DNA of 64,000 nt from contig NW_025766983.1 in NCBI RefSeq assembly GCF_003918875.1, positions 1,116,001-1,180,000 on the forward strand, read 5' to 3'. The notes beneath the pieces are model-generated. The model was not told the DNA's origin. It searched no databases and saw only the letters and a list, made by a program, of their open reading frames with translations. Made by a program: the position numbers and the translations under genes. Below, in pieces: positions 11,869-50,619 of the stretch. Within the stretch, counting starts at the first letter, position 1, and each line of letters opens with the position of its first letter. This DNA is from Haliotis rubra. Taxonomy: Eukaryota.

Positions 11869-12063
11869 GAATAAATGAATGAATGAATGAATGAACGTGT
11901 TTATTCCCTCAGAGTCGAATCCGAATATCATACACATGCAAATACATTATTCACAATGCATCCATCACTTGCAAACAAAATGGAACAGCATTTGTAGCAA
12001 AATGAAATCATACGTTATGTTGCACTGCACTAAACAGCTCGTGAGCAATAGGGAGATTGTGTT

Positions 12064-13415
12064 TAGTAGATGTACAGTAGATGTACAGTAGATGTACAGT
12101 AGATGTATAGTAGATGTACAGTAGATGTATAGTAGATGTATAGTAGATGTACATAGTAGATGTATAGTAGATGTACATAGTAGATGTATAGATATACAGT
12201 AGATGTACAGTAGATGTATAGATAGATGTACAGTAGATGTAGTAGATGTAGATGTATGTACAGTAGATGTAGTATGATATAGTAGATGTACAGTAGATGT
12301 ACAGTGTATAGTAGATGTATAGTAGATGTATAGTAGATGTATACAGTAGATGTATAGTAGATGTAGTAGATGTATGTAGATGTATAGTAGATGTACAGTA
12401 GATGTACAGTAGTAGATGTATAGTAGATGTATAGATGTAGATATAGTAGATGTATAGTAGATGTAGATGTACAGTAGATGTACAGTAGATGTATAGTAGA
12501 TGTATAGTAGATGTATAGTAGATGTACAGTAGATGTAGAGTAGTAGATGTATAGTAGATGTATAGTAGATGCATAGTAGATGTATAGTAGATGTATAGTA
12601 GATGTATAGTAGATGTACAGTAGATGTATAGTAGATGTATAGTAGATGTATAGTAGATGTACAGTAGATGTATAGTAGATGTATAGTAGATGTATAGTAG
12701 ATGTATAGTAGATGTATAGTAGATGTATAGTAGATGTATAGTAGATGTATAGTAGATGTATAGTAGATGTACAGTAGATGTATAGTAGATGTATAGTAGA
12801 TGTACAGTAGATGTACAGTAGATGTACAGTAGATGTATAGTAGATGTATAGTAGATGTATAGTAGATGCATAGTAGATGTATAGTAGATGTACAGTAGAT
12901 GTATAGTAGATGTATAGTAGATGTATAGTAGATGTACAGTAGATGTAGTAGATGTATGTATAGTAGATGTACAGTAGAGTAGATGTACAGTAGATGTACA
13001 GTAGATGTATAGTAGATGTACAGTAGATGTATAGTAGATGTACAGTAGATGTATAGTAGATGTACAGTAGATGTACAGTAGATGTATAGTAGATGTACAG
13101 TAGATGTACAGTAGATGTACAGTAGATGTACAGTAGTACATGTATAGTAGATGTATAGTAGATGTATAGTAGATGTACAGTAGATGTACAGTAGATGTAC
13201 AGTAGATGTATAGTAGATGTACAGTAGATGTATAGTAGATGTACAGTAGATGTACAGTAGATGTATAGTAGATGTACAGTAGATGTATAGTAGATGTACA
13301 GTAGATGTACAGTAGATGTACAGTAGATGTATAGTAGATGTACAGTAGATGTATAGTAGATGTACAGTAGATGTTTAGTAGATGCATAGTAGATGTATAG
13401 TAGATGTATAGTAGA
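12064..13415. repeat. 11-bp satellite (TAGATGTAYAG)n, ~1.35 kb
   Basis: Direct reading; accounts for the spurious 520 and 468 aa ORFs. Confidence 0.97.
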
Positions 13416-14247
13416 TATTTCTTTAGATACCATACGAAGTGAGAAAATGACAGTATTATGTATTCCCATGTATCATAGTCAATTGTTTCAGTTAAGTCAT
13501 GTATATCTGCGCGAAAAACAATGACAGCATAATCGTCGTCAGTATATAAATATATATATATCAACGTCAAGTTTATCAGTCAAGCAGTAGAATACATTAT
13601 TTGTGTCAGACATAAAACATTCACAGCGCAAGATAACATGCCAATCATAGTCACAGCAATGTCGAGTACAGTGGTTACATTCTTTTGACACATTTGCTCT
13701 TGATCCGATTTGGACACAAAGTTGCAGGGGTTGTCATAAATGTGGACAGAGATGGATCAGGACGTGCATTTGTAGGCGTGTGTGAAGTTTGCAGTATGGT
13801 GAGAAGATCCAGTGTCCAAATGTTTTCCGGTGTACTTATGTAGGGGATTGTAAATGCAATCAAGATGCACCTGTCATGCACAAGAGGTCACTGTATCTGG
13901 CGATACAATGAATTCTCTTTGGCATTTGTGATTTTATGCGAACATTTAATACCTTGTGGAAATAAGTTTGCTTTATATTGCAATGTTTTTACATTTTAAC
14001 TATTCTGTGAAAGACATCGGGACAACTGCAGCATTCAGTCAAGTGAAAATAAATCACAGTTTTACTCACGACCTTCTTAAATAAAGTAAATATATATAAC
14101 ACATTGAGAGTGACTTTTAGCAACATACCCGCAATATCACGGCGTGGGACACCAGAAATGGGTTTCGTACATTGTACCTATGTGGGGAATCCAGGCCTTC
14201 AGCGAAAGGTGAACACTCGTAGGACTGTTGCCTTTGCATACTGGTGA

Positions 14248-14413
14248 GTGAGTGAGTGAGTATGGTTTTACGCTGCTTTTAGCAATATTCCAGCAACATC
14301 ACGACAGGGGACACCAGAAATGGGCTTCACACATTGTACCCATGTGGGAAATGGAACGCCGGTCTTCAGCGTGACGAGCGAACGTTTTAACCACTAGGCT
14401 ACCCCACCACCCC
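14248..14413 (-). mobile_element. SINE family A with 13-bp TSD
   Basis: TSD TGCATACTGGTGA at 14235-14247 and 14414-14426; an older truncated copy lies at ~14110-14200. Confidence 0.9.
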
Positions 14414-14682
14414 TGCATACTGGTGACTCTGACCATTGTCAATGGTCATAAAAAGTTATATCACGTGGACACACATGTGGAGGAGGTCAAGCTTGCCAAT
14501 GCTGGTGATTATCCTCTAACAAAAAATATCTTAGTAATAAGTTGATAGTAACCTTATTTCACTAATTAATAAATAATAGCTCCACACGTCGTCCCTTGAC
14601 TAGAAGAAGAAAGAGAAGAAGAATTGTAGAATGTTTCAGTATAAAAGCCACAGGCACATGTCCATTACACAACAACAATATA

Positions 14683-14844
14683 TACTCATGGAAACGAATA
14701 GGGGAAAACACGAAAGTACAAAAGTCCTTTTATTTATTTCCAGATTTTCACCAACAGTGCAATATAAACCATGACAAGAAACCCGGAAAAAGAGTATTGG
14801 AACACATGCACTTTCGTGTGTTCCTTTATTTGTTTCCATGAGTA
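14683..14844. mobile_element. Tc1/mariner-type MITE (TA TSD)
   Basis: TACTCATGGAAAC..ACACGAAAGT / ACTTTCGTGT..GTTTCCATGAGTA inverted repeats, TA flanks. Confidence 0.8.
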
Positions 14845-16542
14845 TATACATACAATGTGGTGGTGTTGGTGGTTCGAAAGCTGTGCAGATGAAGGGTATT
14901 CTGTCATTTTAATGAATTGCTAAAAAAAACCTCTTCACTTTGATATGTCATCTTAATACACACTGAAGCCCTATCGTAATGAAACGTCTTAACACTACTG
15001 TGTACTGTTCACAAACGGGTGTTTATAGGTATGTGTGTACTTTAAGAACGATGTTGGGGGGGAAGGCTGCTAGCGACCAGAAGTTTAGCATTTCAATTGA
15101 TGAAATGCATGAATAGTGCTGACAGGCTTCTGAGAAATCCGCGTAGGTCGAACATATCCATACCACACTATTCACAGTGTTAGGGTTCGAGAGTACTCAA
15201 CCACGATCAAGAGACGTGATTTACTGCCATCTATTCAAGGACCAGACGCCAAGGACACAAACACGGTTGCAAGCAGAACTACTTACTGCGTAATAGAGAG
15301 AGCCCCAATATACATATGTCAGCTCAAATGACACCTATAACAGGTGTGTTTTTGAAGATGTGCCAAGTAAGGGTATAATATATTACACCTATGCCTGGTG
15401 GTATCAGGGTTATTCCACCCCACCCTCCACACACTCTCGTCATATTACCCCCTGCCAACTGCTCCCAGGTTGATTTTAAGTATAACATGATACAATATCT
15501 ATGTAGCATAAGTTTTATTTGGTTTGCTCAACGCCGCTTTGAACTGTGTTTCAATTACATTACGGCGCATAGCCTCAATATTCAGTACCGTGAAGAGCCA
15601 GGTTATAATCGGTCAGATACAAACCATGCTTGTCGTAAGGGGAGACTAACGGGATCGGGTGGTCACACTCGCTGGCTTGCGGAGTTCGTTGTTCTTTTTG
15701 TTGATCACCGGAATGCGTGGCTGACATTCGATCATTGCCTGCGTGTAGCACTAAACTATTTGAGAGTGACTGCGTGTAACATTTTTACACACGTATATCC
15801 CCAGAGTCCAGCGTGAGAGAGTGAGTTGGGAACTACATCACCTTTAGCAATATTCCAGCAATGTCATGTAGGGAATGGAACCACTAGGGTAAATCACCAA
15901 TCACACATTCCAGAATACAAATATAATTTAGATAAATGCACCAAAAGCCTATAATGATATATGTGGTCTAAAAATATGTATACTCTGATAAATATCCTGG
16001 AACTTTTCTCGTACAGAGGTTCATTTTCAAGCCAAATCATATGAGATGACGCTGAAAATAGATGTCCTATGAAAACACAGTCGAGACAAATCGTGCGATT
16101 TATCGTGCAACATACTCTGCTCATAGAAGAGATTTCTTATAGATATTGAGAGTTTTTTGTGCTCTTTTGGCAAATTAGTTGCAAGTGTCATGGAAATGGT
16201 GGACGTTTTGGACGTTTGAGAAGTCATTCAAGACAGAATAGATATATAATACTCTGTAAATCGAGGTTGTGGCGAGCGCTGCATCATGATTTACTGGCAT
16301 AGATGAATATTAGGATTGTTTTTATGCTATGTACATGTCAAAGGCTAAATTCAACATTCTTTATGAAAGCCTGGAGCTTTCACGGGTTTAAAACGTAAAT
16401 CATCTTTTACAATTTCTTTATTCCTTTTAATACTATGGGCTCGAGAATAAATATACAACATGTCATGTATGAAATCAATCAAGTGCATAACATATAAAGA
16501 TATGAATGATATCTGCGTGGTGACAACGTCAATGGATCAATG

Positions 16543-19500
16543 TTAGGATCTGACTTTGAATATAAGTTTATAGTCTCTCGGCCTGTTTTTCTCTGCCTTG
16601 AAGTTTGGCTCCAGACTTGGTTCAACGCCATCTTCTGGGGATATGTGGAAGTTCTTCAGGAGTCCGGCCAGGATGAGATGCAGCTCTGGCTTGGCCAAGT
16701 ACTCCCCTAAGCACGCTCTGCGTCCAACAGAGAAGGGTAGAAAGTGTGTGATGGTTGTCTTCACCTTCCCCTCCTCTGTAAGGAACCGTTCTGGTTTGAA
16801 GGTTGCAGGGTCCTCCCAGTGGTCTGGGTCGTGGTGAATAGCCCAATGGTTTATCAGAACGTTGGAGTTCTTGGGAACGTCGTAGGGTCCTGTGGAAACA
16901 CCATAAGAGATTTAACAAACATGCCTGGTTACGTGGTTAATATCGAGTCCATACGTTGATAAGGATCTTTTAGAAATAAGTCAGCGTTTCAGCTAATAGT
17001 GCGTGCGTGCGTGCATGAGTTTCTGTGTGCCCATGTTACTCCGTACTAGTACCAGTGTTATACTTCAAGCCAAAGGAGACACCATGACGCAATATACAAA
17101 GTACAGATGGGAGACAAATCGGATTGATGGGGATATTATTGCCGAGACCCAAAACATTTTTTTCCATATCCACCTTTACCTGAAATGTGATACTGACATA
17201 AGTTATAACCAGTGATTATAATAATAATAATAATAAATGTGAACTTATAATGCGCCTTTTCCATGCACAAGGCCCATGCTCAAAGCGCTAACAAAGTGAG
17301 TGGATAATAATACATATATACAATAAGGGACTAGTTGCTAGTCATAATGCAGTGAAAACAGATGAGTCTTGAGAAGTCGTTTGAAGGAATAAAAGTCAAC
17401 TGCTGATTTAATGGTGATAGGGAGAGAGTTCCAGAGTAGAGGGGCAGAGCAGACAAAGGATTTCCTTCCAAAAGTTTGCAGTTTGAACCGAGGCACAGAG
17501 AGTAGGTTCAGATTCTGAGAACGGAGCTGTCTTTCTGGAGTGTACGGGGTAAGGAGTTCCTTCAGGTATTCTGGGCCTATGCCATTTAGGCATTTGTAGA
17601 CAAAACACAATATTTTAAAGTCAATTCTTGATTTAACAGGCAGCCAGTGGAGGTTTTCATGACAGGTGTTATGTGTGAGCGCTTTGAAGTTCTGCTTATG
17701 ATTCGGGAGGCTGTATTTTGGACATTTTGCAATTTTGATAGCAGCTTCTGAGAAATACCAAAAAGGAGGCTATTGCAGTAATCAATTCTTGATATAACAA
17801 GTCCCTGGACCAGACCGTGTGCTGCATCACGACTGATGAGATGGCGTATTCTGCCAATGGCTCGTAGATGAAAGAAGCATATTCTGCAGAGTTGATTTAC
17901 ATGAGTGTCCATCGCCAGGTGTGAGTCAAGTGTAACTCCAAGGTCTTTAACAGAGTCCACTGCTTGTATCTCTGCATCTGCTACCAAAACAGTTTTGGTG
18001 GTAATTTGTTTTTGCATTTGCCTGGATCCAATAACCATCACCTCAGTTTTGTCATCATTTAACTTTAGCAAGTTGTTTGTCATCCATGACTTAACATCTT
18101 TAGTGCAGTCTGTTATTTTATGGAGACCCGTGTGAAAGTCCTTGGGAGTTGAGTTTTTCTGAAGTTGAGTGTCATCTGCAAACGAATGATGGCAAATGCC
18201 ATGTTTGTCAATTACGTCTGCAACATCGGTCGTGTATGCTATGAAAAGAAGCGGACCGAGTACCGATCCCTGGGGTACACCACAGTGGACCAAGGAGGTT
18301 TGTGATTTGATGTTATCTAACAGGACAGTCTGACTTCTGCTTTCGAGATAAGATTGTAACCAGATGAGGGGTACCCCATGGATTCCAAATTGGCCCTTGA
18401 GTCTTTCCAGAAGGAGTTGGTGGTCGATTGTATCGAAGGCAGCAGAGAGGTCAAGCAAGATAAGAGTAGCTAGTTTGCCTTCATCAACAGCTGTAAGTAA
18501 GTCGTTAGAGACTCTGAGGAGAGCTGACTCGGTGCTATGATTTGATCTGTAAGCGGACTGGAATTTATCCAAAAGTGAAAAAGCAGAGAAATGATCCCTG
18601 AGTCGAATATTGACTGCTCTCTGAAGTATCTTTGATATAAACTTCAGGTTAGAGACTGGTCGAAAGTTTTTAAGCAAGTCAGAATAGGTTCAAACAGATG
18701 ATCATCGGATCTTGGCCCGACCAAGGGATGCAACTCTGCACAACCTTTAATAACCGAACCACTCGTGATCCTGGTACAGTTGAAACAGTCAACAGTTTGC
18801 TGTTTTGCATGTTCAAAATTTATACGCAAATCTATGCAGCTAACGTACCGTTTATGACATATTTCAAACTGGAAAACAACAGTAACTTAAATAACCCCCA
18901 AACCGCAGTTCCAGAACTATTTAGTACATTCCACCGGTCCTTGAGAAATCTTACTACCCTGGAGCCAATGGGCAAGCGTAAATATACCTATTTTAGCGTC
19001 CTTTATTGCCCTGTGGGGTAGTCCGAAAGGGACAACAGTGCTGAGTCTCATGCTTTCGTATATCACAGCTTGAAGGTAGCTCAGGTAGGGGCGGTCAACA
19101 ACGTTAGCCATACATCTCGACTCTGGAAACAAATACATTAGTATAAACAGATGTTGATAAGACGTCTTTCGTCTAAATACATAACCCATGACACCTTAAG
19201 ATTGATTTTTTTCCAAAATAATAATAAACATAAACTTTCAAATGCTGACTGATAATATGGTGCGTTTTCCGTCGTCCCTACGATATTGGGTAAAATCTGG
19301 ATGTATCTCAATCATTGACTGTTCAAATCGATTCAACTGCTTTCATCCGAACAAATGAAAGAGATCAGAATTATAGGCTTTGCAATATCCCACTTTGGTT
19401 TCTTCCAAACTGACATTACTACGAGTTGAACACTGAAATTGGTCAGTGGTCAATGTCTCTTACCTAGCACCTCGTCCAGTTCCTGGTGGACCTTCTCCTG

Positions 19501-22500
19501 AATGTCTTGGTGGACAGCCAGATACAGCAGCGTCCACGACAACGTCAGTCGGACAGGGTCGTTACCGGCTGGAGTACAAAGAAGAAACAAGTCTGTGAGT
19601 GTTATCACGTCTTGACGATACTTCATCTTTATGGTGGCAATTCAGGTGGAACTTCAGAAGCTGTGGTATTAGTGATCGAGTGAGTATGGTTTTATGCCGC
19701 TTTTAGCAATATTCCAGCAACATCACGGAGGGCACACCTGAAATGAGGCTTCACGCATTGTGGCCATGTGGGGAGTCGAACCAGGCCTTCGGCGTGGCGA
19801 GAGAACGCTATCCCATTGCGCTTTAGTGACCCACCAGGCTTCATGAGCACTGGCAGCAGAACCTTAAAACCTATTCTGCCCACTGGTACAAATATTGCAG
19901 TCCCTCCTCAACAGATAGTGAGATCGGTACCTGAATCAAATGTGTCAAGACCTATATTATAGAATACCCCAACAACTACATGCACAGTCCTACTTTTGTA
20001 TTACGTATTCTGCATTACTTTTGTAATGCACCCTCTCAAGTTGAGAAAAACGCCGTTAGCATCCAGAAATTGGGCACTTCGTCGACTTACCATTGAACAT
20101 ATCGAGTATGGTATGCACCACGTGATCATCTGTTAGACGCTGAGATACCTCCACTTCCTCTTCCTCATCTTCAAGTTGAGACAACAAGATGGCATCTAAC
20201 ACATCCCGTATGTTCTCTGCAGTAAAAGAGTAACACAATGGTGAATATTGTTCTGGGTATAAGGATTCCCAGTAATACTTCATTTTAATCAAATTCTCGA
20301 GCTGTGAATATGATTTCACGCCGCTTTTAGAAATATTCCAGCAATATCACGGCAGGGGACACCAGAAATGGGCTTCACACATTGTACCCGTGTGAGCAAT
20401 CGAACCCGGGCCTTCGGCGTGACGAGCGAACACTTTCACCACTAGGCTACCCCACCGTGCCGGGTACTTCACAAACAGAACCCAGTAGAGCAAGTTAAAA
20501 GCTTGCTTCCTCTCTAGAAATATATATTCAATATAGCCGATGCAAAAGTCCATCAATTAACATAACATCAGTAAGTAATTCAACCTATAGCTCCCCTCGT
20601 CACTACAGTTGCAGAACAAAGTCCCATAATTCCCATAACAGCCGTGCAGAACCTTCAAAGTAAGTTCATTTGCTGAAAAAAGGTTCACAAAGGTTTTACT
20701 TCCAGAAAATCCAGTCATCAATACTTTGCTTCATAACATACCTGCAGCACATAATGTATGTGCAGACTGTCAGAAGATGAGTAGAACCTGATGGAACTCA
20801 CCTGGGTTAAATGTTTCTTTGTGAATCTCGACTCTCTTTTCAATGTATTTCTTTAATCGCTTGACAGTCGTGAGCATGTTATTAAATCTTGGCGTCGGCA
20901 GCCACTTCAGAGGCGGGACGATATCCTCCCAGAAGAAAGATTCTGTGAGCTTGCTGTAGTCGTCCAAGAGCGCCATATACTTTCGGAAGTCATTACTTCC
21001 TACGTCATGCCTACAATCAACATGACATCATGACAACTGTTGCACACAGACCTACAATCAACATTACGTCATGAAAACTGTTGCACACGGACCTACAATC
21101 AACATGACGTAATGACAACTGTGTTGCACACGGACCTACGTTAATGAGTGAATGAGTTTAGTTTTACGCTGGTTTTAGCAATATTCACGGCGATGGACAC
21201 CAGAAATGGGCTTCACACATTGTACCCATGTTAGGAATGGAACCAGGGCCTTCAGTGTGACCAGCGAACATTTAATTACTGGGCTACCTCACCGACCCTA
21301 CAATAGCATATACACATACAGTCGGGCACCGTTGTCTCGATATTCATGCGACCAAGAAAAAATATCGAGTTATCCGAACTTCGAGACATCCGACCAGGCC
21401 ATATCATCACATATCACTATGAAAGAAAACAAAACGCTTCTCAGTATGGTTTGATTCGAAACTATAATCCCTTATCAGTCGTGTTTAGTCGTAACAGTGA
21501 GTACTTCCTAATTAATTCCTTCTTAATTAATCCTACTTACTAATTACTAATCTACTGTTTGGTAATATATCAGAGTTAGATATGCTTTCTTACATTCTGT
21601 CATTCGTATTGAGAGGAACATCAAACATCAAGTAATTGAATGCGAACAAATCGCTCAAATCACATCTGCTTGAATGAGTGTACGTTAATTAAGGCCGCAT
21701 TTAGTATAGTTCCTACTTAATGACGGTCGAGTCGGGACCCGACAAACCAGTCAGTGGAATCACAACTAACGACCCAGAAGGTGTCTGAAGATGAAGCCAA
21801 GTGCAATGCATCCTTATTAATCAAATGTAACACTCACGTCTTGTCGAAGCAGACGCCACACATGATGTTCGCGTCGATGAGGGCGAGGTAGGGCAGAGGA
21901 TCAACCGCCGTCTTCTCCGTCTTCAGCAGCTCTATCACCTTGGAGACAGACTGGTGAATCTTGTCCTCCAGGTGGAAGCCAGACAAGAACGTGTAGGACC
22001 TAAAAATAAAGACCTTAATTTTAATACCGTAACTACTATTGCTCCTCCACCTCCTACAACAACTACTGCTTCTACTTACTACTATAACTACTACTACTGC
22101 TGCTGTTGCTACTACTAATGCTGCTACTACTACTACTACTACTACTGGATCTTCATGTCGTAAGCTGACTCCCACCAAAACACTTAAGAACTTGAGGCCG
22201 ATTCTTACGGTATCAGGACATATCACGGCAGGAATAGCAAAGAATGGGTTCCTATGTGGTGTCTACCAACACGACACACTACTAAGACAACGGACCAAAT
22301 GTAAAACGTATTCCAGATTCGCAACAGCACGACTGCACCACCCGTGCCCAGATTTGTCACAAACTATCATTTCAGAATATGACTGACTGACTGACTGAGT
22401 TTAGTTTGTAGCACTATTCCAGCAACATCACGGCGGGGGACACCAGAAATGGGATTAACACATTGTGCCCATGTGGGGAATCGAACCCGGGTATTCGGCG

Positions 22501-24596
22501 TGACGAGCCAACGCCTTATCCACTAGGCTACCCCGGCACCAATTTCAGAATATGAACGTCAACAAACTCGATATATGACTAATAGGGATGATAGCCCACC
22601 TTAGTGCCATACTCGTCACCTTCCGCTGGTGCTTGAGTGTCGGCGTGTAGTCCGAGAACTGGATGCCCTTCTGACCACAGGTCATCGCTGCAACTGCGAG
22701 AATATAAAGTCAGAATTAAACGAAAGTAAAGAATGAGTTTGGATAAATGCTGTTTTGGTCAATGTTCCAGCTCAGTCACTGATGTCAGCGTCCAATAGTT
22801 ACCTGAGTGAGACTGTGGACGAGCTGTGAATGCAGACTGTTGTTTGACGAATGTTTCATCCACGGCCTCTCTGGTGTTCAGATACATGGTGGCAACACGA
22901 CCTGCACACATGGATACAACCATTAGAAATACTTATAGACATTTTCATATCCCCTTAAAATACAATTAAATATTGTTAAATTTTTTTACTATAATACTTA
23001 AGTTTTAAATTATTTTCACATGAGGTTTCATTCCTTTATGACGTGTGTCACTGGTGCGGCAGGATACGCTCATCTTTTCGCGAACAGTGGTATCATCGCA
23101 ATTTGTCGGTGAGGTAGCCTAGTGGTCAGAGCGTTCACTCGTCACGACAAGAACTCGGGTTTGATTCCACACATGGGTATAATATGTGAAGCCAATTTCT
23201 GGTGTCCCCGTTTGATATTGCCCATTGATATACGTATAATGCAAAATCCATATTCAGTCAGAAGTCTTGGGAATATCAAAGGGTTTTGTCGCTTATATTT
23301 ATAGGCATATCCCTTAGTGATGAAAACATACAAGCGACCCATTTGTCCGTGGTCAAATGCGTAAAACGACCCTTTGAACGGTAGTATAATATTATCTTTT
23401 TTTATCAAGCATGGCAGGTTAATCTGGAGTGGAAGCCTCAACTCTTTACTTGTATAAGCACAATCGTGCATATGTGGTACTCACAAACCAAGCATCATTG
23501 TCATGAAAAATGATGGATTCGAACACATTGTGACTGGATTCTGTTCAAAGAGATACATCAATTACGGACACAGAGTATCGCCAGACCACCTGTGTCTCCT
23601 TAGAATGAGTGAAAGATTTTGTTTAAAGCAATTTTTAGCAATATTCCCGCAACATCGCGGCAGGGGTCACCAGAAATGGGCTTCACACATTCTATCCATG
23701 TGGGGAATCGAACCCGGGTCTTTGGCAATCAGACTACTGCACCGATAACATTGATACATTCAAATTCAATGGATACTGTAGCGGACCACAAGCATTTTCA
23801 CCATTATGAGGACGGGTCATTTAAAACATTTTTTCAGATCTGACAATACCTTTGTAAACAGTCATATAGGGTCCAAAATATCTTGCCCAGTCATACAGCG
23901 TCTCGACTGTATCATCCTTTAAATCTGTGAACATAAACAACATGCAATGGTCTGTAAAACTGCTTACTGCTCATCGTTCGTATAGAACTCTCTTACAGCA
24001 GCTACACACGGAATAACTGGCATTACTATAACACACACAATGAAAGACGAACTGTTGCTTGTATTTCTGCTTCACTGTTCCTTCAGTTTGCAATTCATCG
24101 AATGTTATCTGCTTTCTCATGTGGAATTATCTATGTTTGTTTGTTGTTTAACGCCTCACTCAGCAATATTCCAGCATATGGCGGCGGTCTGTAAATAATT
24201 GAGTCTGGACCAGACAACCAAGTGATCAACTGTATGAGCATCGATCTACGCAGCTGGGATACGATGACATGTGTCAACCCAGTCAACAAGTCTGGCCACC
24301 CGATCCCGTTTGTGAGAATGAAGAAAAGAAAAGAACTCAATATCTTCTTATGAATGGACAAAGCCAGCCAAACAACAGTAAGGTCTAAAGGTGCATGTTG
24401 TCTCACCGTGGTCAAACGAAACACGTGGGTAGGTACTATACCTACCTAGAAGACTGCCGAGTAACGGAAGGCCCCTGGGCCCCGGGGGTAGTCGTGGGAA
24501 AGGACGGGTCCACCACAGGGTGAACAGCCCGGCCGTGATGCCGATGATGGCACATTGATACATCTGGGACAACTCGGAGAAAGCTGCTAATAGCAT
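16543..24596 (-). CDS. Cytochrome P450, clan 2 (CYP17A1-like), 10 exons, 500 aa (CYP-A)
   Basis: Exons 24596-24446, 23924-23850, 22901-22803, 22693-22600, 21999-21838, 21010-20802, 20216-20091, 19568-19464, 19122-18988, 16889-16543; all GT-AG, 1503 nt, open. N-terminal TM plus PPGP hinge, ESMR (ExxR), KPERF, FSVGRRACLG heme motif; I-helix AGNDPV. Confidence 0.93.
17221..18680 (-). mobile_element. 5'-truncated L2/CR1-clade LINE (RT and C-terminal domain) in CYP-A intron 9
   Basis: NFRPVSNL, QSAYR, LDLSAAFDT, GVPQGSVLGP, FADD, LKLNDDKTE, HITPV/LHWLP; (TTA)n tail at ~17221-17235; single frameshift at the T4 run 17654-17657. Confidence 0.93.
19678..19835 (-). mobile_element. SINE family A
   Basis: Same head, body and tail motifs as 11701-11868, more diverged. 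Confidence 0.8.
20311..20462 (-). mobile_element. SINE family A
   Basis: Family motifs including A and B boxes. Confidence 0.85.
21010..21140. repeat. 41-bp tandem repeat x3 overlapping the acceptor of CYP-A exon 6
   Basis: CCTACAATCAACAT(G/T)AC(A/G)T(C/A)ATGA(C/A)AACTGTTGCACAC(A/G)GA units start at 21010, 21051 and 21092. Confidence 0.85.
21146..21298 (-). mobile_element. SINE family A
   Basis: Family motifs. Confidence 0.8.
22055..22147. repeat. (CTA/CTG)n trinucleotide microsatellite
   Basis: Direct reading. Confidence 0.85.
22383..22541 (-). mobile_element. SINE family A with 14-bp TSD
   Basis: TSD ATTTCAGAATATGA at 22369-22382 and 22542-22555. Confidence 0.9.
23105..23240 (+). mobile_element. 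SINE family A, partial
   Basis: GGTAGCCTAGTGGTCAGAGCG..CACATGGGTATAAT..TTTCTGGTGTCCCC. Confidence 0.8.
23606..23745 (-). mobile_element. SINE family A
   Basis: Family motifs. Confidence 0.75.
24133..24312 (-). mobile_element. SINE family B, 5'-truncated
   Basis: Reverse complement of the family B body with (AAAC)n tail. Confidence 0.8.
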
Positions 24597-29231: not shown

Positions 29232-30659
29232 TTATCGATATTTTACATACTTACATCGCTACTTTTGAATAAATTCTTACATCGCACGTGTTATGGTATA
29301 AATGTTACCTGAACGTAAATACAAATAATAGAACATCATTATATTGTGACACTTTTAAGTATGTAATTGAAAGTATTCGCACCGTATGTCTTGAGAATAT
29401 ATTTCACTTAAACAATGAGTATGTGATGAGATGAAAACGTGTTGTATTATATCAGTGTAAATATATGAATAAAATCAGTTAATGAGTCATGGTTATATCG
29501 TTTTACATCTTTGATGTATACAGTATATATGACATGCATGTATACAGACAGCGTACGTCTTTGGTATGTTTTACAGTGAAATGAAATTTAAGCGTGTTGT
29601 ATTACAGGGGGTATAAACAGGGATCGACACTATATAACGTGTTGTAGATTATCCCTGGTATAAATTAATAATTCCTGTTGTCAGAATAGTTCTAGTTATG
29701 AACAAAACCTAACACAACATTTACTCTTGAAAAAGTCAAAACTGGGCTCGGGTTATGACTTAGAGTTTGGTTTAAGTTGGGGAACAGATATTCGTCAGAA
29801 TAGAATACCTTGAAGTCAAAAGCTGTTGATGACTGCTTGTAACAGATATTCGTCAACACCTGACCTGATGACCCTACATTCACCGTGACCCAGGACATTG
29901 CTAGCTTTTCGGTCACGTGATGTCGGAACCTGTCCGCCTGAACACACGTAGCACCTCAATGCTCATATTCAATGCATACACACAGTGTACAATACAATAA
30001 GCGCAGTAGATAGGAACGGTGTATATCGAACAATGTCACTTACTAGTGCGAATTTAGAGTTGTCTCCTCTTCCGTCTACAGCCGCATGCCTATCTCCTCA
30101 GGTGAAATGTACAATTTGTGTCGCTGTTGACATGCTGTGAGCGCCCCGTACCGTGACGAGGGGAACAACTGGGGCCCTATTTGGGTTCTTTCACGAGTGA
30201 CGGAGAATCACGCTTAATTGAACCAATGAAATTAGCATCTGAGGAGAAACGTGCCAGTCGAAAGATGATCTGTGTCAAGGTGATAACTTCTGTACCTCAT
30301 TTTCTGTGTTGATTAACCCCGGAGGCCCTGTAGAGGTTATGTCAAACGTGTTTATTTCAAGAGTTGACAAATACGAAGGGTAATTTATTGGGTGTGCCAT
30401 AAATGTAGAGCAGGTATACTTATACAAATACTGTTGGAAGTTTTACAATGGGGTAATGTAATGTGTAATGTCCACGTGGTGAAGACTACGGCTGAGTCCG
30501 GGAGCTACGTGTAATTCAATCTGTTTCGGGAGATCGGGGTTGTGCCGATTTTGTCTAATGCACCGCAATACGTTGTGCTTTCTTTGGGCTCTCCAGAAAC
30601 GTTGAAAGTACGCTTGCACTCTGTGTCGTCCCGACAAGTACCAAGCCCTGTAACACACC

Positions 30660-32600
30660 GGTACAACACAATAACAATACCACACCAGTACAGTACCATG
30701 ACAGTACCACGCCAGTACAGTACCATGACAGTACCACGTTAGTACAATACCATGACAGTACCACACCAGTACAATACCATGACTGTACCACACCAGTACA
30801 ATACCATGACAGTACCACACCAGTACAGTACCATGACAGTACCACGCCAGTACAGTACCATGACAGTACCACACCAATACAATACCATGACGGTACCACA
30901 CCAGTACAGTACCATGACAGTACCACACCAGTACAGTACCATGACAGTACCACGCCAGTACAATACCATGACGGTACCACACCAATACAGTACCATGACA
31001 GTACCGTGCCAGGACAGTACCATGACAGTACCACACCAGTACAATACCATGACAGTACCACACCTGTACAAAACCATGACAGTGCCAGACCACTACAATA
31101 CTATGACAGTACCACGCCAGTACAATACCATGACAGTACCACACCTGTACTATACCATGACACTACCACGACAGTACCACACCAGTACAATACCATGACA
31201 GTACCACACCAGTACAATACCATGACAGTACCACGCCAGTACAATACCATGACAGTACCCACCTGTGTACAATACCATGACAGTACCACACCAGTACAAT
31301 ACCATGAAACCAGTACTATACCAGTACAGTACCATGACAGTACCACACCAGTACAATACCATGACAGTACCACACCAATACAATACCATCATGACAGTAC
31401 CACACCAGTACAATACCATGACAGTACCACACCAGTACAATACCATGACAGTACCACACCTGTACAATACCATGACAGTACCACGCCAGTACAATACCAT
31501 GACAGTACCACACCAGTACAATACCATGACAGTACCACACCAGTACAATACCATGACAGTACCACACCAGTACAATACCATGACAGTACCACACCTGTAC
31601 AATACCATGACAGTACCACGCCCATACAAATCCATGAAAGCACCACGCCAATACCATGACAGTACCACGCCTGTACATTACCATGAAATCACCACGCCAA
31701 ATACAATAACATGACAGTACCACGCCAATACAATACCATGACAGTACCACACCAGTACAATACCATGACAGTACCACACCAGTACAATACCATGACAGTA
31801 CCACACCTGTACAATACCATGAAAGTACCACACCTGTACTATACCATGACAGTACCACGCCAGTACAATACCATGACAGTACCACACCTGTACAATACCA
31901 TGACAGTACCACACCAGTACAATACCATGAAAGTACCACACCAGTACAATACCATGACAGTACCACGCCAGTACAATACCATGACTAGTACCACACCAGA
32001 ACCACATACCATGACAGTACCGCAACACTACAATCAGTTGACGAGACAACACCTGTACAATTCCCATGACAATACCTCACCAGTACCACAATACCAATGA
32101 CAGTACCACACCTGTACAATACCATGACCATTACCACTACTGTAAAATACCATGACATAACCTCACCTCCACAATACCATGGCAGTACCACACCTGTACA
32201 ATACCATGACCAGTACCACACCTGTTCAATACAATGACATAACCTCATCTCAACAATACCATGACAGTACCACACCTGTACAATACCATGGCAGTACCAC
32301 ACCTGTACAATACCATGACATAACCTCACCTCCACAATACCATGACAGTACCACACCTGTACAATACCATGACCAGTACCACACCTGTACAATACCATGA
32401 CAGTACCACACCTGTACAATACCATGACAGTACCACACCTGTACAATACCATGACCAGTACCACACCTGTATAATCCCATGACATAACCTCACCTCCACA
32501 ATACCATGGCAGTACCACACCTGTACAATACCATGACAATACCACACCTGTACAATACCATGACATAACCACACCAGTACAATAATATGACCAGTACCAT
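30660..32600. repeat. 27-bp satellite (CAGTACCACACCWGTACAATACCATGA)n, ~1.9 kb
   Basis: Direct reading; source of the many MTVPHQYNT and WYCHGIVLV pseudo-ORFs. Confidence 0.97.
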
Positions 32601-33418
32601 TCAAGAACCACACAGGTACAAAAAAAGTACTGCAACACCACCTCAGTGAAGTGAGCCAACACTTGATTCTTTCCCAGCAAAAGTTAATTTACCATGGCAT
32701 GACAGATTGGTCATGTGAAAGTCATGAACGTGTATTCTGTTACGTGGCGCTCTCCACGCTGACTCACCAACACTCACCCAGACCGTCATTTCAGCAGAGG
32801 TCGAGACAACACAGAGTTTATGGTGACCTGGAAGTGTTTTGTGAAGATATACGCGCCTGGCTGACTTGGCTTTTACCTGAGTTCGGTATACCCGACCTTC
32901 GTGCCCGACAAAAGCCGATCCCACCAACCCGGCTTTAGACGAGCTAGTTCGTTCATCATGTCAAGGGGAATCGTTTCTCCTCCAAACAGCCTCCGGTTGT
33001 ATGTGGTCAGCAAAGGCTGTCTTTGCAAAACATTATCATGAACTCTCAGTTTCAGAAATTACGTTAATTTGTAAATGTAATCAATGTGTAGATCATTGTA
33101 GGTACGTGCGTGTGTCAATGCGTGCGTATTAGGGGAAGGGTGTGCGTGCTTGCGCGCGCGTGTGTGTGTGTGTGTGAGAGAGAGGGGTGTTCATACGTGT
33201 ACACAAATACAAAATTTCTACTGTTGATCTTGAACTAGTGCTTCAATATGTTTTGTATTCCTTCTTCGTTTATTGGTGTTGTTCCAGTAAATTTATGACA
33301 AGCAGAACTATTATATATATCAGGGGAACATTTGTTTGTTAAATAAATGTTGGATTTTTTATCTGCACCCTTAACTATTGACCCGTAAAATGATTCGCTC
33401 CCTCGTGAGCGACAGTCA

Positions 33419-33536
33419 GGTCACGTGATCACCCTCAGTCTATATTTATACTCGGTTTTGTTTGTGTCGGTCCGTGTCTCACGGTAGCTGATACCTCGAA
33501 ACATACAGAAGCGGATCTATCTTCATAATCGTAAGT
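33419..33536 (+). promoter_or_regulatory. Candidate CYP-B promoter and non-coding first exon
   Basis: E-box GTCACGTGAT at ~33420, TATA-like TATATTTATA at 33441, consensus donor GTAAGT at 33531; acceptor TTTCAATTTAG just upstream of the ATG at 34637. Confidence 0.4.
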
Positions 33537-34636
33537 TCCCGTCATTTCTCAGCTATTCGATTTGTTTGTCTTGTGAATACTAACCAACCCCACAGAATAT
33601 CTCAGGGATATTTTCACTGCACCAGGTGACACAGTTAGTATCTTGTCGGTGCATTTGACTTTCCAGTCGCCATGCCTACTTACATTCAAATTTTCATGTC
33701 AACTCTGGTATATCTCACTCAGTGAATGTAGGATGTCGTTTAGACGGAGGTTTGGGCGATATCAATTGCCCGTGAACTATTTGCTTGAGGGTCTAAACTG
33801 GTGGCTTACGTCGACTTTTGTCATTTGTAACTTAAGCACGACACGTTACATGTTAACAGGCGCAGTGTATGCGTGCGCGTGTGCGTGTGCGTGTGTGTGC
33901 GTGTATTAAAATTTCAAGGTTTATATTTCAGATATTATCAATTTTGGCTATGTACGTTCTCTGGAGGACGCCCCACTCACTGTTAATGCCACATGTTATA
34001 GGTATAAGAATTTAACCGGGGCTGTCTTGAATCAAACAAAAATCATCAAATTATTAATTTTAATTTATTGTTTAACGAAATTTCGTACATTAGCTGCAAT
34101 TCATTGCTACAATCGAGTCTGACCCTCTCTATAGGAAAAATGGCTTTCATTTGGAACAATTCAGAAGGTGATGAAAGTATTCATTGGAAAACATTTACTC
34201 TAGTAACCAGCCTATAACACACGATAGTTCGTCGAAAAGCCCTTCTCGAAAACGCTTCAATATTTTCCAACGAAAATTGGCAGACATACCAAGCAGATCC
34301 TGAAGCAGTGCCTTTTACTATTTGCGGACTTTTGGGCATTTACTTATTAAACTGTGCCATACCAAGACCAGGTTGTCAAGTTATGGCTTTTGCTATTTGG
34401 GGATTTGTTGAATTTATATATCTTCAGTTTCCATGGCAAGGACTTCCAAATCTCAGTTACATAGTATTTTTTATATAGCTCATACTATTCTTGCATTCGG
34501 ATAGAAATATTAGATAGATCTTCACAGGACTCTCACCAAGGTTGAATTACAGTAATAGTCAGATGATATATTCGTTCGTCTGTACAAGGGATTTGTCTTC
34601 CTCTGGTGACTCTTGTTTTCAATTTAGTCAAACATC

Positions 34637-37600
34637 ATGGCTGGGACTTTGGAATGGATTAGTGCAACTGCTTTGGAGTACCGGATCACACTAATGCTGG
34701 TTTTGGCAGTGACGGTAATGGTGTATTTTATGACCCGGAAACGTTACAAGCTTCCACCGGGACCAAGTGGTCTCCCGTTGCTTGGCAATATTCTAGGTAA
34801 GCTGAACACCAAAGCAGACGGAAAATGTTAAACATATGAAGTCTTCATATTTGAAACTGTCCTGAGTTTAAGTCTGCGCGAATATTCCCTAAAATTTGAA
34901 TTTTAACTCATAATCCCAGGTTTCAAAGTTATATGCTTCTATAACTTAGAATTTTAAGTGTGGCCCTGCCCATATACGTATATATGTTTCAACGTTTACA
35001 AATAATCAGAATACATGTGTTTTGTTACATCAATTGCAGCTATACAAAACAAGTCACTGTTCCGGATGCTGATACAACTGGAAAAGAAGTACGGCCCCGT
35101 GATAACCCTTAACCTTGGTAAAGCGGCTTTGTGATTGGTTCAAATTGTTCTAAGTTTCAAGGATACAACCAATGATGTAACGACAATTAATACGATATTC
35201 TTCCATGGGTGGCACAGTCGTCTGGTGGGCCATATTTCCCTGTAAAGCATAGAGGCCTTTGTGCACGCCACTGGCTCGTGATTGTGGCTTCGAATCCTAG
35301 TTTGTCCCGATTATGTGTTTTGGTGTGTCAGTCCATAATTTTCTCAGAAATGTTTCGTTATTAGAAGTTGATAGGAATTTAAACTTATGATCATTAGGTT
35401 TTTGACAATATACAGATGGTAACTATTTGATCTAAGAGCATTTTAGACATTACAAACAAATAAAAGGTGGTGCTCATCTTCTACTCCTAAATTGCACAAT
35501 GCGTCCCGTTACATTAATATTTTGTCATTTACCTTCATTATACTTTAGTCTCAGTAATCCACATCCAAATGTAATCAATATTGTACGGAGTTTTCTGTGG
35601 ACAATACGTAATAAATATTTTTCAGGAGCTAAAACAGTTTTATATACAATATCCTGAGCATTTATTTAATAAACAAGTCCATGACTCAAAAGACCTAACA
35701 TTAACATGGTATGTTTGTCTGTTGTTTAACATCGCCCTCAGCATTATTCCAGCTACAAGACGGCGATCTGTAGGTGATCCAGCCTCAGTCAGCCTGACCA
35801 CCCGATCCCGAGTCGCCTCAAGCATGGGTTGTTAAAGATTAATTCTAACCCGAATCTTCACTGGTCCAGACTAAGGACTTCTGTTGGTCTGTGAGACCTT
35901 TATGGATTTCACCGTGCACAGGCTGTGGTCTTATAGCTGGGGTATTTTGTACTGCGACAAAATCTGTTTGGTGTTTATTATGAACGACAGTAAACATGGC
36001 TTGTTTCCCGTAGGTCCAATACGCACTGTGTTTCTCAACAACTTGGAAGTTGTGCAGGAAGCGTACGTAGGGAAGTCTGTGGACTTTGCGGGACGGCCGC
36101 AGACGTTCTCAGGTTCGTTCAATAAAAAGCATAATAAAATAATATGATAAAACCAACAAAATAACTTCTTGCAAGCACAATTTATATTTCTCATTCAACA
36201 AGCGATGGTAAACATAGCTAAAGGTTAGGTTTACCATTTCTATAAACTTTGGAAAGTACATTTGCAATCACTGTGAAGTCTTACAATGTCCACATTATCT
36301 GCGAAGATTTCACTGTTCATGTGACTATTTCAGGATTGGCTTTAACCGAGGGAGGCAAGGACATTGCTTTCACAGATTATGGACCGACGTGGCAACTCCA
36401 TCGGAAACTGGCACTGAGGGCCCTCAAGTAAGTCGAGAAACAAATGCAGAGGTTCTTATCTTACTGTATCTTATGCCTTTGTTTCTGACGGGTGCCACCG
36501 GTGGGGCAGGATGCCTTCACGTTTTCGTCAAGACCTGGTATTCTCACACATGCTCATAATATTATTAAATTTGTACAGTTGAGTCTGCATTCATCAGGGA
36601 TTTATTATGGGTGCAGAAAGGGTTTTGTCGCTTATATTTTTATGCTTATGGAAAGCCAGCCAAGAATAATGTCAATACTGAAACACTGGAGACATTTATT
36701 GGGGTGACATCGGTAAACTAGAACTATGAAAGTTTGTTTTGTAGGCACTACATGAAAGGCGAGAGGTTTCAGGACACGATAACTGAAGTTATGGAAGCTG
36801 TGACGATAGAGATGGGGACAGAGACGGGCTCGTTTGACATCTACAGCTACATCAACCTCGCCATCTTCAACATCATCAGCAAGATCTGTTTCAATGAGAA
36901 GTGAGCAACATAAATATTACTCCATATTTCTTACAGTTCAGCTGCATGGTGTTTATTTCCGGTGAAAAGAAAATGGTTTCACAATAATAACAAAATACTA
37001 TTTACCCCATGACTCATTCGGCATACATGAACTGTGATATTAGGATCGTTTAGATATATTCTCATGAAATGTTTTATGTTTGAAAAAGTATATAAAAGCT
37101 CCTCTCTGTCAGTCTTTCGTCTTCCCGTCCGCCAAATGGATCACCTTAATACACTTTTACATTTTGGACGGAACATATTGAATGTACAGATATTGCCCTT
37201 TATTCCGACATTTTTCGGCACCTGGTCAAATCTATTCCTTCTTCTTAGTATGTGGCGGTTATTTTGTGTTTTGTATGTTTCCCGATGTTTGTACCGAAGT
37301 ACTACTTGTGAAGGGATGAGCACAACCACTGCAATATGTACGTTGGCATGTATGTTGATATTTGAAGATATAACGCCCAGAAAGATCCGAATTAGACTGA
37401 CTGACTGAGTTTGGTTTTTACGCCACTTTTAGCAATATTCCATCAAAATCACGGCGGGGACACCAGAAATGGGCTTCACACATTGTACCCATGTAGGGAT
37501 TCGAACCCGGGTCTTCGGCGTGACGATCCAACGTTGGTCAGATCCGAATTAGAACTGATCTTCAGCAACATTTTCTTATCCTTAGGGGTTGACGGGATCT

Positions 37601-40600
37601 GGTGGTCAGGCCCCGCTGACCTGGTTGCCAAATAGCATCGTACCATACTTACGTTATGTTCCTCTCGTCAAACACTGGACTGTCTAGTCCAGACTTATTT
37701 TAACAGACCCTCTCCAGATAGACCTGGAGTAGTATGGATAGCGGAGTGTATTAAAAAGCCAAACAATATTTTGTTTTAGGTTTTCATCGGACAATGAAGA
37801 GTTCCTGAAAATCTGTAAGGCACTTGACATCTTCTCGCAAGAAACAGGAAATGGATTCGCGGAAGATGTATTCCCTCCTTTAAGACTTTATCCAACAGCG
37901 AAATTCAGGAAGTTCATGAAACTAAACGATGGGATACTTAAATTCATGTACAAAAGGATCAACGCACACAGAGAAACGTTTATAGCAGGTAAATATTCTG
38001 AGCATCATGAGCGTCGAACTACGCAATTTGGATACAATGACATGCATCAACCAAGTCCGCGAGCCTGACCACCCGTATCCTGTTAGGCGCCTTTTACGAC
38101 AAGCGTATGGGTTATTGAAGACCGATTCTAACCCGGATCTTCACCGGTCTCAAAAGAGTTACCACGTACCAGTTCTTGTATCTATCCGCGTTTAATCGAT
38201 TAAACTCGACGTCTTTAGAGCAAGACACCTTGTGTCAAGTGGCTACTACAGCTTCGTGAATTAAGCTCCACTTCAATGTAGAACTTTTCTCTCGCACCAT
38301 CGCTTATGTAATTCAATAATATTGTCCGTCACACAAGATCAGCTGTTGTATCTCGTCTACAATGGTCTGTATGTTGTATAACGTCGCTCTTAGGAAAATG
38401 AGGATGCGGGCTTGTATATAATCTAGACTTGTCCTGACTCTACCGTGGTTGATCGATGTTGCGATTGACGAATCCCGGCACAGGGTTACTATGACACGCA
38501 ATCAACAAGGTCTCCCAGTCTGACCACCAGATCACCAAAGTCACCTCTTACAACAAGCACGAGTTGTTTTGGGCCTATAATAATATCCTCGGGAGAACTT
38601 TCAAATTCATTGACATCTCATGAAAATAATTCACGAGCTACTTGTATTTACCGTATGTTTTCCCATAATGATCTGTGACATTAATGGCATCGTATTTTCA
38701 CAGTTTCGAGATGGTTTTATTGCCTTTGGAATAGTAAAATGTACGACAAATGTTAACGTGACAAAGTCCCATCACAAAGGACCTTCAAAATGTCTCGCGT
38801 CCATAATCCAAAACTAATGCATTTCCATGCAGCGGAAAACAAGCGAACTGTTTCGTGCAAAATATCTCGCGATTATTTAATAACTTCGTATGTTTTATCG
38901 CTTACTTACAAAAGCAGTATGCGAATTGGAAGAAACGTGTTATTGCAATTAAATCATTATTACTGTACCAAATGCGAATATACAATTAAGTCAACATCGG
39001 AGAGTGCGGGAATGTTGGTCGGATCAGTCTGCCAATTTTAAAGTTAAAACGTGAACAATTGATGCCAGATATTCTTAGCAGCACTGGATGGTGGATAGAG
39101 GGTGTGCAATATGTATCATAATGCAGATCTTATCCGGAATCAGATTCCAAGTAACTTCTCATTCCATATCAGCGCAGGGATGAACATCTGAAAGAACTGA
39201 CTGGTGGTACTGTCCACAAATGAAAATTCCCCATTACTGAGGCTGTAATACCCTGAATCCGGCTTCCCAGTGGGTGGGAAGACCATCCATATATTCACAC
39301 TCTTGTCTGAAGAAAATAATTTGATAACCACTTAAACCTACATCACATGATGATATATCTGTGTCTATCTGAAAACATTCGTTAGAGTGATTCCCTGCTT
39401 TGAGAAGATTTGAGTCAAGGCCACTGTACAGGTTTTTAACGAATGGTTTACTTTACAGGTATCAATGTTTCTAAAACCACGCATGCCTCATAAAATATCA
39501 ATTTCCTTTTGTAAAACATTGAGCTTGTGTCAATAAGTGTTGCCCTTTACCAAGACTTGGTTTTTCAGATGCACAACGTGACTTCACAGACGCCATGTTG
39601 ATTGCCCAGAAAGAGGCAGAGGAGGAAGAAGACCAGGAGCTGCTAGACCAGATCACCAACACGCATCTCGGCCAGACAGTAGCGGATGTTTTCACAGGTA
39701 ATCAAAACACATATGAAGCTTTTCAAAAGCATCGCGAGAAACTAGGAAGTACGCTACTACTTGAAACAAATATCTTTGAAACATATCGGTAAATTGATCA
39801 GACACAATTATAATAATGTTTGTCAATATAGAATTATGTATCTTCAAGATCGAACGTAACTATATACACAGATATTTAAATTGTGAATATTAAATTCCCA
39901 CTTTGGTTTACATTTTGTTTACCGTTATTTACGATATAAACTTTCACCTGACAGCGGGCTTGGACACGTCTCGACAGACTCTGTATTGGACAGTCCTGTT
40001 CCTTGCAGCCCACCCGGAAGTACAAGCGAAACTCCATGCGGAAGTGGACAGGGTGCTGGGTAGGAAAACCTTCAGAATTCAAATCATTTTCTGTCAGTGC
40101 CATTTTCAAATTTAAGTTTGCCAAGTTTATCACAGGCATTTAGACAGCATTTGACATCGATGCTGAAGGATACAGTATCTACGCCACGCCACGCCACGCC
40201 ACGCCACGCCACGCCACGCCACGCCACGGGTTTTTGTAGCCCTACAACTTTGTAGCGCCTGGTCGCCTTGTTACTTGCAGTGTAACTGATACTCAATCTG
40301 GAGTAACGCATTTACGACATTTTGTACATCAGGACGTCTGTTTTCGTTGATGTATCGCAATACAACCGGCAAAAACCCTTTAAATAATGATGATGCAATA
40401 TTTGTAAGATTCCAACAACATCATGAGGTTTTATTGAATCAGTCAAATAGACACGCATTCTGTATCACCGGTCACAAACACATGAACAGGCAAGTCATGC
40501 ACTTGAAGGAAAAAAACCACACAGAATTATCATGGTTTATGGAATTGCATTGTACTTTATTTTTGTCACTGACTTTAAAATATTCTCGTCATGTCTACCA

Positions 40601-43030: not shown

Positions 43031-43218
43031 CCTTAATCATCTGTTTTCCAGATCAAATGCTATCACCAAACATCACGCCATATGACGTTCAATATGACTC
43101 TGGAATTTCGTTGCATGGTTGAAATTTCATTCACACGTATTCTCTTTATTAAGGCAAACAGAAATATGCATGATATATACTGAAGTCACTAAAAGGTGTG
43201 TCACCTCCATTTACTTGT

Positions 43219-50470: not shown

Positions 50471-50619
50471 GTGGGGAAGCAACCCTTTCAAGTGCTTTAC
50501 TGACGTTATCCTTATTGTGGGACTTTGTGTCGAGCCCATATCCTTTTACTACGTACTTGGAGTACCATTCGTTCCAGATGCTGCTAAATATAGCTGACTT
50601 CCAACCCTCATGTCACAGA

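Follow-up and report, generated by a model that had tools for sequence, protein, structure and literature searches.

A clan 2 cytochrome P450 of abalone with proline at the position of the I-helix catalytic threonine

Results and Discussion

We analysed a stretch of 64,000 nucleotides from Haliotis rubra (hereafter the window; NCBI RefSeq assembly GCF_003918875.1, contig NW_025766983.1, positions 1,116,001 to 1,180,000 of the forward strand), which carries a cytochrome P450 gene with proline (Pro310) in place of the catalytic threonine of the I helix. The P450 is functional: the gene is intact and transcribed, the proline is fixed in four species, and the protein is under purifying selection. 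It adds an uncharacterised member to the P450s already known to lack the I-helix threonine, and a new kind of chemistry is not established by it. In the explanation that we prefer, with a probability of roughly 0.55, the protein is an orphan clan 2 P450 of the Haliotis lineage that would still work as a reductase-dependent oxidase, with a non-canonical delivery of protons.

Proline at the I-helix threonine position

The exons were traced through stop-free stretches and splice sites and were then joined into a model. The resulting gene (copy 1) occupies 24596-16543 on the minus strand in 10 exons, with GT-AG borders at 9/9 introns. Its spliced coding sequence (CDS) of 1503 nt has no internal stop and gives a protein of 500 amino acids, a 100% match to the NCBI-annotated protein (database entry P0196). 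A second copy at the end of the window is described below. The features of copy 1 are as follows.

16543-24596, minus strand: whole gene, copy 1; GT-AG spliced model equal to P0196, Pfam p450 match of 349.9 bits
24446-24596, minus strand: exon 1; start codon, membrane anchor and PPGPRGLP hinge (residues 37-44); spliced model
23850-23924, minus strand: exon 2; spliced model
22803-22901, minus strand: exon 3; spliced model
22600-22693, minus strand: exon 4; C helix L128-K-H-Q-R132, with Trp replaced by Leu and Arg retained; spliced model and alignment
21838-21999, minus strand: exon 5; spliced model, within the spliced RNA contig X11 record 8
20802-21010, minus strand: exon 6; spliced model and RNA contig
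20091-20216, minus strand: exon 7; N-terminal part of the I helix, ending with D-M-F-N and the base G of Ala306; spliced model and RNA contig
19464-19568, minus strand: exon 8; I-helix core A-G-N-D-P-V; spliced model, RNA contig over the full exon
19555-19557, minus strand: Pro310 codon CCT; position of the conserved catalytic Thr, same in 5/5 Haliotis sequences
18988-19122, minus strand: exon 9; K helix with E-S-M-R; spliced model and RNA contig
16543-16889, minus strand: exon 10; PERF, heme loop F-S-V-G-R-R-A-C-L-G, L helix and stop codon; spliced model

Exon 8 (105 nt) is bordered by an AG acceptor and by a GT donor at 19463/19462. It begins with CC, which completes Ala306, followed by GGT-AAC-GAC-CCT-GTC, and the exon 7/8 junction reads D-M-F-N-A-G-N-D-P-V-R-L-T-L-S-W. 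The codon of Pro310 appears as AGG on the plus strand (19555-19557). A sequence-only reading of the window had reported A-G-N-D-P-V in exon 8, with proline for the catalytic threonine; the minus-strand reading of 19464-19568 and the phmmer alignment both agree with it. The codon CCT that it had placed at 19555-19557 and again at 62646-62648, in copy 2, was confirmed at both places.

In the phmmer alignments with Protein Data Bank (PDB) chains, D309-P310 is aligned to the E/T pair of zebrafish CYP17A1 and to the D/T pair of human CYP1A1. Pro310 therefore sits at the position of the catalytic threonine. In an alignment of 62 proteins, this column outside the abalone clade holds Thr in 54 of 57 sequences and Ser in the other three (3/57). 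Among 83 relatives of about 500 amino acids, proline at this site is found in six proteins of the abalone clade only. The oxygen-activation motif (A/G)Gx(D/E)T(T/S) of the I helix is thus replaced by A-G-N-D-P-V, and by A-G-N-G-P-V in H. asinina, in which the acid residue is lost as well (D309G). Within the abalone clade, the acid and alcohol positions are not conserved together. Of the four P450 signatures, the I-helix motif shows the least conservation and is not required for membership; 13 CYPs of the annelid Capitella deviate strongly in it (PMC4229089).

The other P450 motifs are intact in P0196: E363-x-x-R366, P418-E-R-F421 and the heme loop F438-S-V-G-R-R-A-C445-L-G, all of which fall on invariant or nearly invariant alignment columns. 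Retained, too, are R103, R132, R420 and R443, which belong to the conserved basic and heme-contact residues. The C helix reads L128-K-H-Q-R132 where WxxxR is expected. All the motifs named in the sequence-only reading (LKHQR, ExxR, PERF, the heme Cys motif and the 500-residue frame) are thus present. At sites where at least 75% of the relatives agree, the clade has 14 specific replacements, which include T310P, W128L and K431T/N. W128L was dropped as a special sign, since Leu is found at this position in 5/57 canonical relatives of the alignment as well.

Conservation and transcription of the gene

The sister protein P0151, from copy 2, was placed on scaffold QXJH01000312.1 of GCA_003918875.1. 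The protein of the window shares its 90% cluster with the orthologues P0195 of H. cracherodii and P0197 of H. rufescens, and the H. asinina proteins P0001 and P0198 are in a second cluster. All of them carry proline at the I-helix threonine site, and the orthologues of the three species share the codon CCT with H. rubra. Four loci (L001-L004) were taken and each CDS was rebuilt on the 10-exon structure, in each case giving the deposited protein exactly. The reading frame and the nine introns are intact in 5/5 Haliotis genes.

Between species, the ratio of nonsynonymous to synonymous substitution rates (dN/dS) is 0.09-0.13 by the NG86 method, far from 1, and 0.10-0.16 by YN00, at pairwise dS of 0.25-0.58. 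For H. rubra and H. rufescens, 120.5 synonymous differences on 337 sites stand against 47.5 nonsynonymous differences on 1160 sites (Fisher p = 4e-48), and p is below 1e-24 for the dN/dS comparisons in general. Purifying selection on the protein is strong. Exon 8 is the most conserved exon, with 93-97% nucleotide identity between species, and among the five sequences position 309 is the sole variable one in residues 288-327, a stretch that includes the whole I helix (293-324). Proteins of the proline clade are 91-94% identical across species, against 76-90% for the best cross-species pairs of three canonical Haliotis paralogues, the pairs having been chosen by best match with orthology assumed.

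RNA contigs of four public runs were mapped onto 18950-22010. A contig of 1346 nt from run X11 (record 8, depth 27) matches 18987-19122, 19464-19568, 20091-20216, 20802-21009 and 21837-22001, pieces that are consecutive in contig coordinates and are joined exactly at the modelled junctions. The contig is therefore spliced at exons 9 through 5. In exon 8 it differs at two positions, both synonymous (Q326 and A323), and the proline codon is unchanged. A contig of run X1, which belongs to another study, connects exons 9 and 8. Among 14 exonic variants in the RNA contigs, 9 are synonymous. The gene is expressed and correctly spliced, and at least one further haplotype carries the proline.

These facts bear on the possibility, raised in the sequence-only reading, that the proline is a recent loss-of-function change, or belongs to a decaying pseudogene or a sequencing error. 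A single change would suffice for it, as CCT is one base from ACT, and the two copies in H. rubra may come from a single locus that was assembled twice, and so would not be two observations. The same codon is nevertheless found in four species at dS up to 0.58, dN/dS is about 0.1, the frame and nine introns are intact in five genes, and a spliced transcript of another individual has the same codon. Sequencing error and recent loss of function were excluded by the four-species conservation, the dN/dS values and the RNA contigs, and we give this possibility a negligible weight. The conditions under which the sequence-only reading would have been refuted (Thr in the orthologues, no expression, dN/dS near 1) do not hold. 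Pro310 is real, and is neither a read error nor a chance variation.

Purifying selection shows that the protein matters, which is not the same as showing catalysis. With two residues of the heme pocket changed, the protein could be a conserved but catalytically inert P450 fold with a role in heme or ligand binding, in regulation or as a scaffold. Against this, the Cys ligand, the heme loop, ExxR and PERF are invariant and the I helix is more conserved than the remaining protein. To our knowledge, there is no well-established precedent of an inert microsomal P450. We consider an inert fold improbable.

In H. asinina (L003), NCBI gives two isoforms. X1 (P0198, 505 amino acids) is longer by the five residues G-L-S-T-G where exons 9 and 10 meet, as would be expected from an alternative acceptor of exon 10 about 15 nt upstream, near L003 16482-16497; X2 (P0001) uses the exon 10 acceptor common to the other species.

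Family, phylogeny and fold

The protein matches Pfam p450 (PF00067) over residues 37-481 with 349.9 bits, against a cut-off of 22.8. The nearest proteins by sequence and by fold belong to clan 2, which comprises CYP1, CYP2, CYP17 and CYP21, and both the N-terminal anchor and the proline-rich hinge of a microsomal P450 are present. The description of the gene as an intact mollusc clan 2 P450, given in the sequence-only reading, was thus borne out by the 500-residue frame, the Pfam match and the clan 2 relatives. The PDB matches found with phmmer are CYP17A1, CYP1A1, CYP1A2, CYP2B, CYP2C, CYP2E and CYP21.

The proteins of one P450 family share, by convention, at least 40% amino-acid identity. 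Since its identity to the solved CYP1A1, CYP1A2 and CYP17A1 chains is 27-31%, the abalone protein is a member of neither CYP1 nor CYP17. The vertebrate enzymes are similar to it in architecture, hinge and heme loop (phmmer E-values of 1e-71 to 1e-63), but they keep the acid-Thr pair and the C-helix Trp. The label 'cytochrome P450 1A5-like', given to the orthologues by NCBI, is therefore nominal with respect to CYP1A, and this automated name should not be taken as a function. Nor does the sequence place the protein in the peroxide-rearranging families: none of CYP5A1, CYP8A1 and CYP74 occurs among the 54 PDB sequences at E <= 1e-40, all of which belong to CYP17, CYP1, CYP2, CYP21 and two plant families.

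In a maximum-likelihood tree of 43 clan 2 proteins, the five proline-bearing sequences form a clade with 100% support inside a gastropod CYP17/CYP1-like group. Its stem, at 1.12 substitutions per site, is the longest internal branch of the tree, and the branches within the clade measure 0.002-0.046. The nearest proteins outside the clade have 40-43% identity, a level at which synonymous sites between the clade and these relatives are saturated. The full-length query gave no protein with an identity between 43% and 91%, and a search of other species for partial orthologues with residues 235-385 of P0196 gave 41 candidates, none of them at E <= 1e-20. The same gastropod group contains the P450s named 'steroid 17-alpha-hydroxylase/17,20 lyase-like', including the neighbouring paralogue in the window. 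These share the same 10 exons where mapped; they differ in their identity of 40-43%, in that all have A-G-x-D/E-T/S and nearly all W-x-x-x-R, and, for the canonical paralogues, in a faster evolution between Haliotis species than that of the proline clade.

An AlphaFold2 (AF2) model, built from the alignment of 62 sequences, was read for secondary structure and confidence. It has a mean predicted local distance difference test score (pLDDT) of 88.5 and a predicted template modelling score (pTM) of 0.88. The I helix is unbroken over 293-324 in the model, with a mean pLDDT of 87 for 301-310 and 95 for 311-320. The best solved matches in Foldseek are human CYP1A1, zebrafish and human CYP17A1, CYP1A2 and CYP2C enzymes, with template modelling (TM) scores of 0.85-0.9 at 27-31% identity. 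Because of these matches and of the model, the predicted fold of P0196 is a canonical P450 fold.

Possible chemistry of the enzyme

The sequence-only reading had taken the step from the proline to a non-monooxygenase chemistry. Animal and bacterial precedents do not favour this step. The natural proline of the whitefly enzyme CYP6CM1 (Bemisia tabaci), Pro326, stands at the I-helix threonine and was proposed to be part of a hydrophobic substrate cavity (PMC6675907), and CYP6CM1 hydroxylates imidacloprid and pymetrozine only with NADPH and cytochrome P450 reductase (CPR) (PMC4657471). Both CYP6CM1 and the abalone protein are animal P450s of the endoplasmic reticulum type with a natural proline at the conserved threonine. 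The former, however, is a xenobiotic-metabolising enzyme of insect clan 3, from another phylum; the latter is a clan 2 protein that is strongly conserved across species and is without the C-helix Trp and, in one species, without the acid residue as well. The Bacillus subtilis enzyme CYP134A1 (CypX) is an O2-dependent oxidase. Its conserved alcohol residue is replaced by proline, the O2-activation region being otherwise hydrophobic (PMC7731078). Apart from the proline at the alcohol position it differs from the abalone protein, being a soluble bacterial enzyme of an unrelated family that acts on a cyclodipeptide.

Since CYP6CM1, dependent on NADPH and reductase, and the oxidase CYP134A1 also carry proline, the residue is not diagnostic of a chemistry. 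With precedents on both sides, the inference from proline to non-monooxygenase chemistry is not compelling. Such chemistry would be possible, and the case for it is somewhat weakened by precedent.

The precedents on the other side are the CYP152 peroxygenases, in which Arg-Pro replaces the acid-alcohol pair and the Arg binds the substrate carboxylate (PMC5818669). The enzyme might, like them, have abandoned O2 activation and use a pre-formed peroxide, either as an H2O2-driven peroxygenase or as an isomerase or lyase of lipid hydroperoxides or endoperoxides, of the kind of CYP5A1, CYP8A1 and CYP74. Neither member of the acid-alcohol pair appears to be needed in the clade, in which Pro310 is universal and H. 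asinina has Gly309. Two residues that are conserved elsewhere, the C-helix Trp and Lys431, have been lost. A very long stem followed by tight constraint also fits a change of function. The parallel drawn in the sequence-only reading with the Arg-Pro of CYP152 nevertheless breaks down at its defining residue: the carboxylate-binding Arg is Asp or Gly in the abalone clade, and the motif is Asp-Pro or Gly-Pro. The CYP152 enzymes (P450 BS-beta, SP-alpha and OleT), which share the proline, are bacterial, soluble and H2O2-driven, and no closer sequence relationship to them was detectable. In addition, the heme loop is a canonical FxxGxRxCxG, the best matches by sequence and fold are CYP17, CYP1 and CYP2 and not CYP5A, CYP8A or CYP74, the anchor, hinge and conserved proximal arginines are kept under selection, and CYP6CM1 pairs proline with NADPH- and CPR-dependent hydroxylation (PMC6675907, PMC4657471). 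Use of a pre-formed peroxide is, in our judgement, possible but the less probable course. Somewhat more doubtful still is the specific form in which a CYP17/CYP1-like duplicate gave up canonical O2 activation in abalone and acts on a pre-oxidised lipid (hydroperoxide or endoperoxide) or by substrate assistance. If true, it would be an independent molluscan counterpart of the chemistry of CYP5A1, CYP8A1 and CYP74, for example in oxylipin signalling.

We therefore return to the reductase-dependent oxidase as the preferred reading. The gene would have arisen by local duplication, which is consistent with the adjoining canonical paralogue, and a strong divergence would have followed, leaving 40-43% identity to the closest relatives. 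On the stem, the I-helix Thr would have changed to Pro and the C-helix Trp to Leu, and the protein would have been held almost constant since then. It would remain a microsomal oxidase that depends on a redox partner, and the retention of the anchor, the hinge, R103, R132, R420 and R443 weakly favours such dependence. The canonical acid-alcohol proton relay would no longer be used, protons being delivered via ordered water or the substrate. Pro310 may line and shape the pocket above the heme, by analogy with the proposal for CYP6CM1. Because the conservation is tighter than in the canonical paralogues, a specific and endogenous substrate is suggested rather than broad detoxification; the uncharacterised, abalone-restricted enzyme probably acts on such a substrate.

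Several points weigh against the reductase-dependent oxidase. The D309G replacement of H. asinina hints that the whole acid-alcohol unit is dispensable, which would be just as compatible with an O2-independent chemistry. P0196 has lost the conserved Trp of the C helix, which contacts a heme propionate, and the conserved Lys431 near the heme loop is replaced in the clade. The retained proximal basic residues argue weakly for reductase dependence, and in the literature library that was searched no paper on this abalone P450 was found.

Whichever chemistry applies, the gene is a natural case in which the catalytic threonine of an animal microsomal P450 was changed to proline and the proline was then conserved, being fixed across the genus. 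With a constraint stronger than in its canonical sister genes, and with the partner acid gone in one species, it is a convenient test case for the need of the acid-alcohol relay in animal P450s.

The second copy

Copy 2 (P0151) runs from 59632 to 64000 in the window, and its remainder extends past the window end; the complete gene is found in locus L004. Its visible parts are as follows.

59632-64000, minus strand: copy 2, visible part
59632-59978, minus strand: exon 10
62080-62214, minus strand: exon 9
62555-62659, minus strand: exon 8
63186-63311, minus strand: exon 7
from 63897, minus strand: part of exon 6

The block 56357-64000, which starts four bases past a gap of 100 N (56253-56352), is 97.66% identical to 13289-20905. 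In exons 7-10 and the part of exon 6 that lies inside the window, none of 817 bases differs between the copies (0/817); outside the exons, the difference is 1.38%, with 101 gap columns in addition. The full copy 2 in L004 and copy 1 are separated by differences at 9 nt and 4 amino acids. The RNA contig, which is of another sample, differs from both copies at 18/740 exonic positions. The distance between the two copies is therefore not greater than that between alleles. Copy 2 may be an uncollapsed haplotype; a recent duplication is the other possibility, and the sequence would look alike for both.

The sequence-only reading had used copy 2 as an argument against a read error. The proline is indeed real, but copy 2 lends it weak support, since it may be a haplotype next to the scaffold gap; as an independent confirmation it was set aside.

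In intron 9 of copy 1 there is a reverse-transcriptase open reading frame (ORF) of 367 amino acids (17341-18689, minus strand; Pfam RVT_1, 111.6 bits). It is a fragment of a retroelement of the long interspersed nuclear element (LINE) type, and intron 9 of copy 2 (59979-62079) holds one too. The two H. rubra copies have an intron 9 of about 2.1 kb, compared with about 1.0 kb for H. cracherodii and H. rufescens and 0.46 kb for H. asinina. These lengths and the presence of the element in both copies suggest that it inserted in the H. rubra lineage alone, before the two copies split.

The neighbouring paralogue and the repeats of the locus

A canonical P450 paralogue adjoins the proline gene in all four species. 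The two genes are head-to-head in H. rubra and H. asinina, but both point the same way in H. rufescens and H. cracherodii. In H. rufescens and H. asinina, the proline gene has AIG1/GIMAP genes on its opposite side. In the window the paralogue lies at about 34637-42135 on the plus strand and is the orthologue of H. rufescens P0157, with 68-86% identity per exon. Its I helix reads ...DVFT / AGLDTSRQTLYW (39565-39711 and 39954-40067, plus strand). The motifs W-Q-L-H-R-K and A-G-L-D-T-S are canonical, and in the heme loop F-S-V-G-K-R-A-C-M-A-E, Ala replaces the usual Gly after Cys-x.

An older duplication relates 31503-36560 to 51095-56252 with 91.5% identity. The latter block, which ends at the N gap, contains a degenerate, partial 5' half of the paralogue at 54304-56108; exon 1 of this half is at 54304-54471 and its C helix reads W-Q-P-R-S-K. 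A stray fragment on the plus strand (50184-50303) resembles exon 6 of the proline gene, with 82.5% identity over 40 amino acids. The partial duplicate in 51095-56252 and this fragment were left behind by repeated duplication of P450 genes. Long tandem-repeat arrays (30634-32599, 50501-52209, 12054-13416 and 42355-43033), whose self-identity is 80-90%, flank the duplicated blocks; the array at 12054-13416 has a strong GC skew of 0.53. These arrays may have mediated the rearrangements.

Stretches of introns 7, 6 and 5 of copy 1 (19671-19780, 20289-20494 and 21113-21320) are matched by thousands of contigs from the four RNA runs, with summed word depths of 1e4-5e5. The three stretches share the translated motif CVKPISG.P.RDVAGILLK, which has many other occurrences in the window. 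The repeat, similar to a short interspersed nuclear element (SINE), is very abundant and is also present in RNA-derived contigs.

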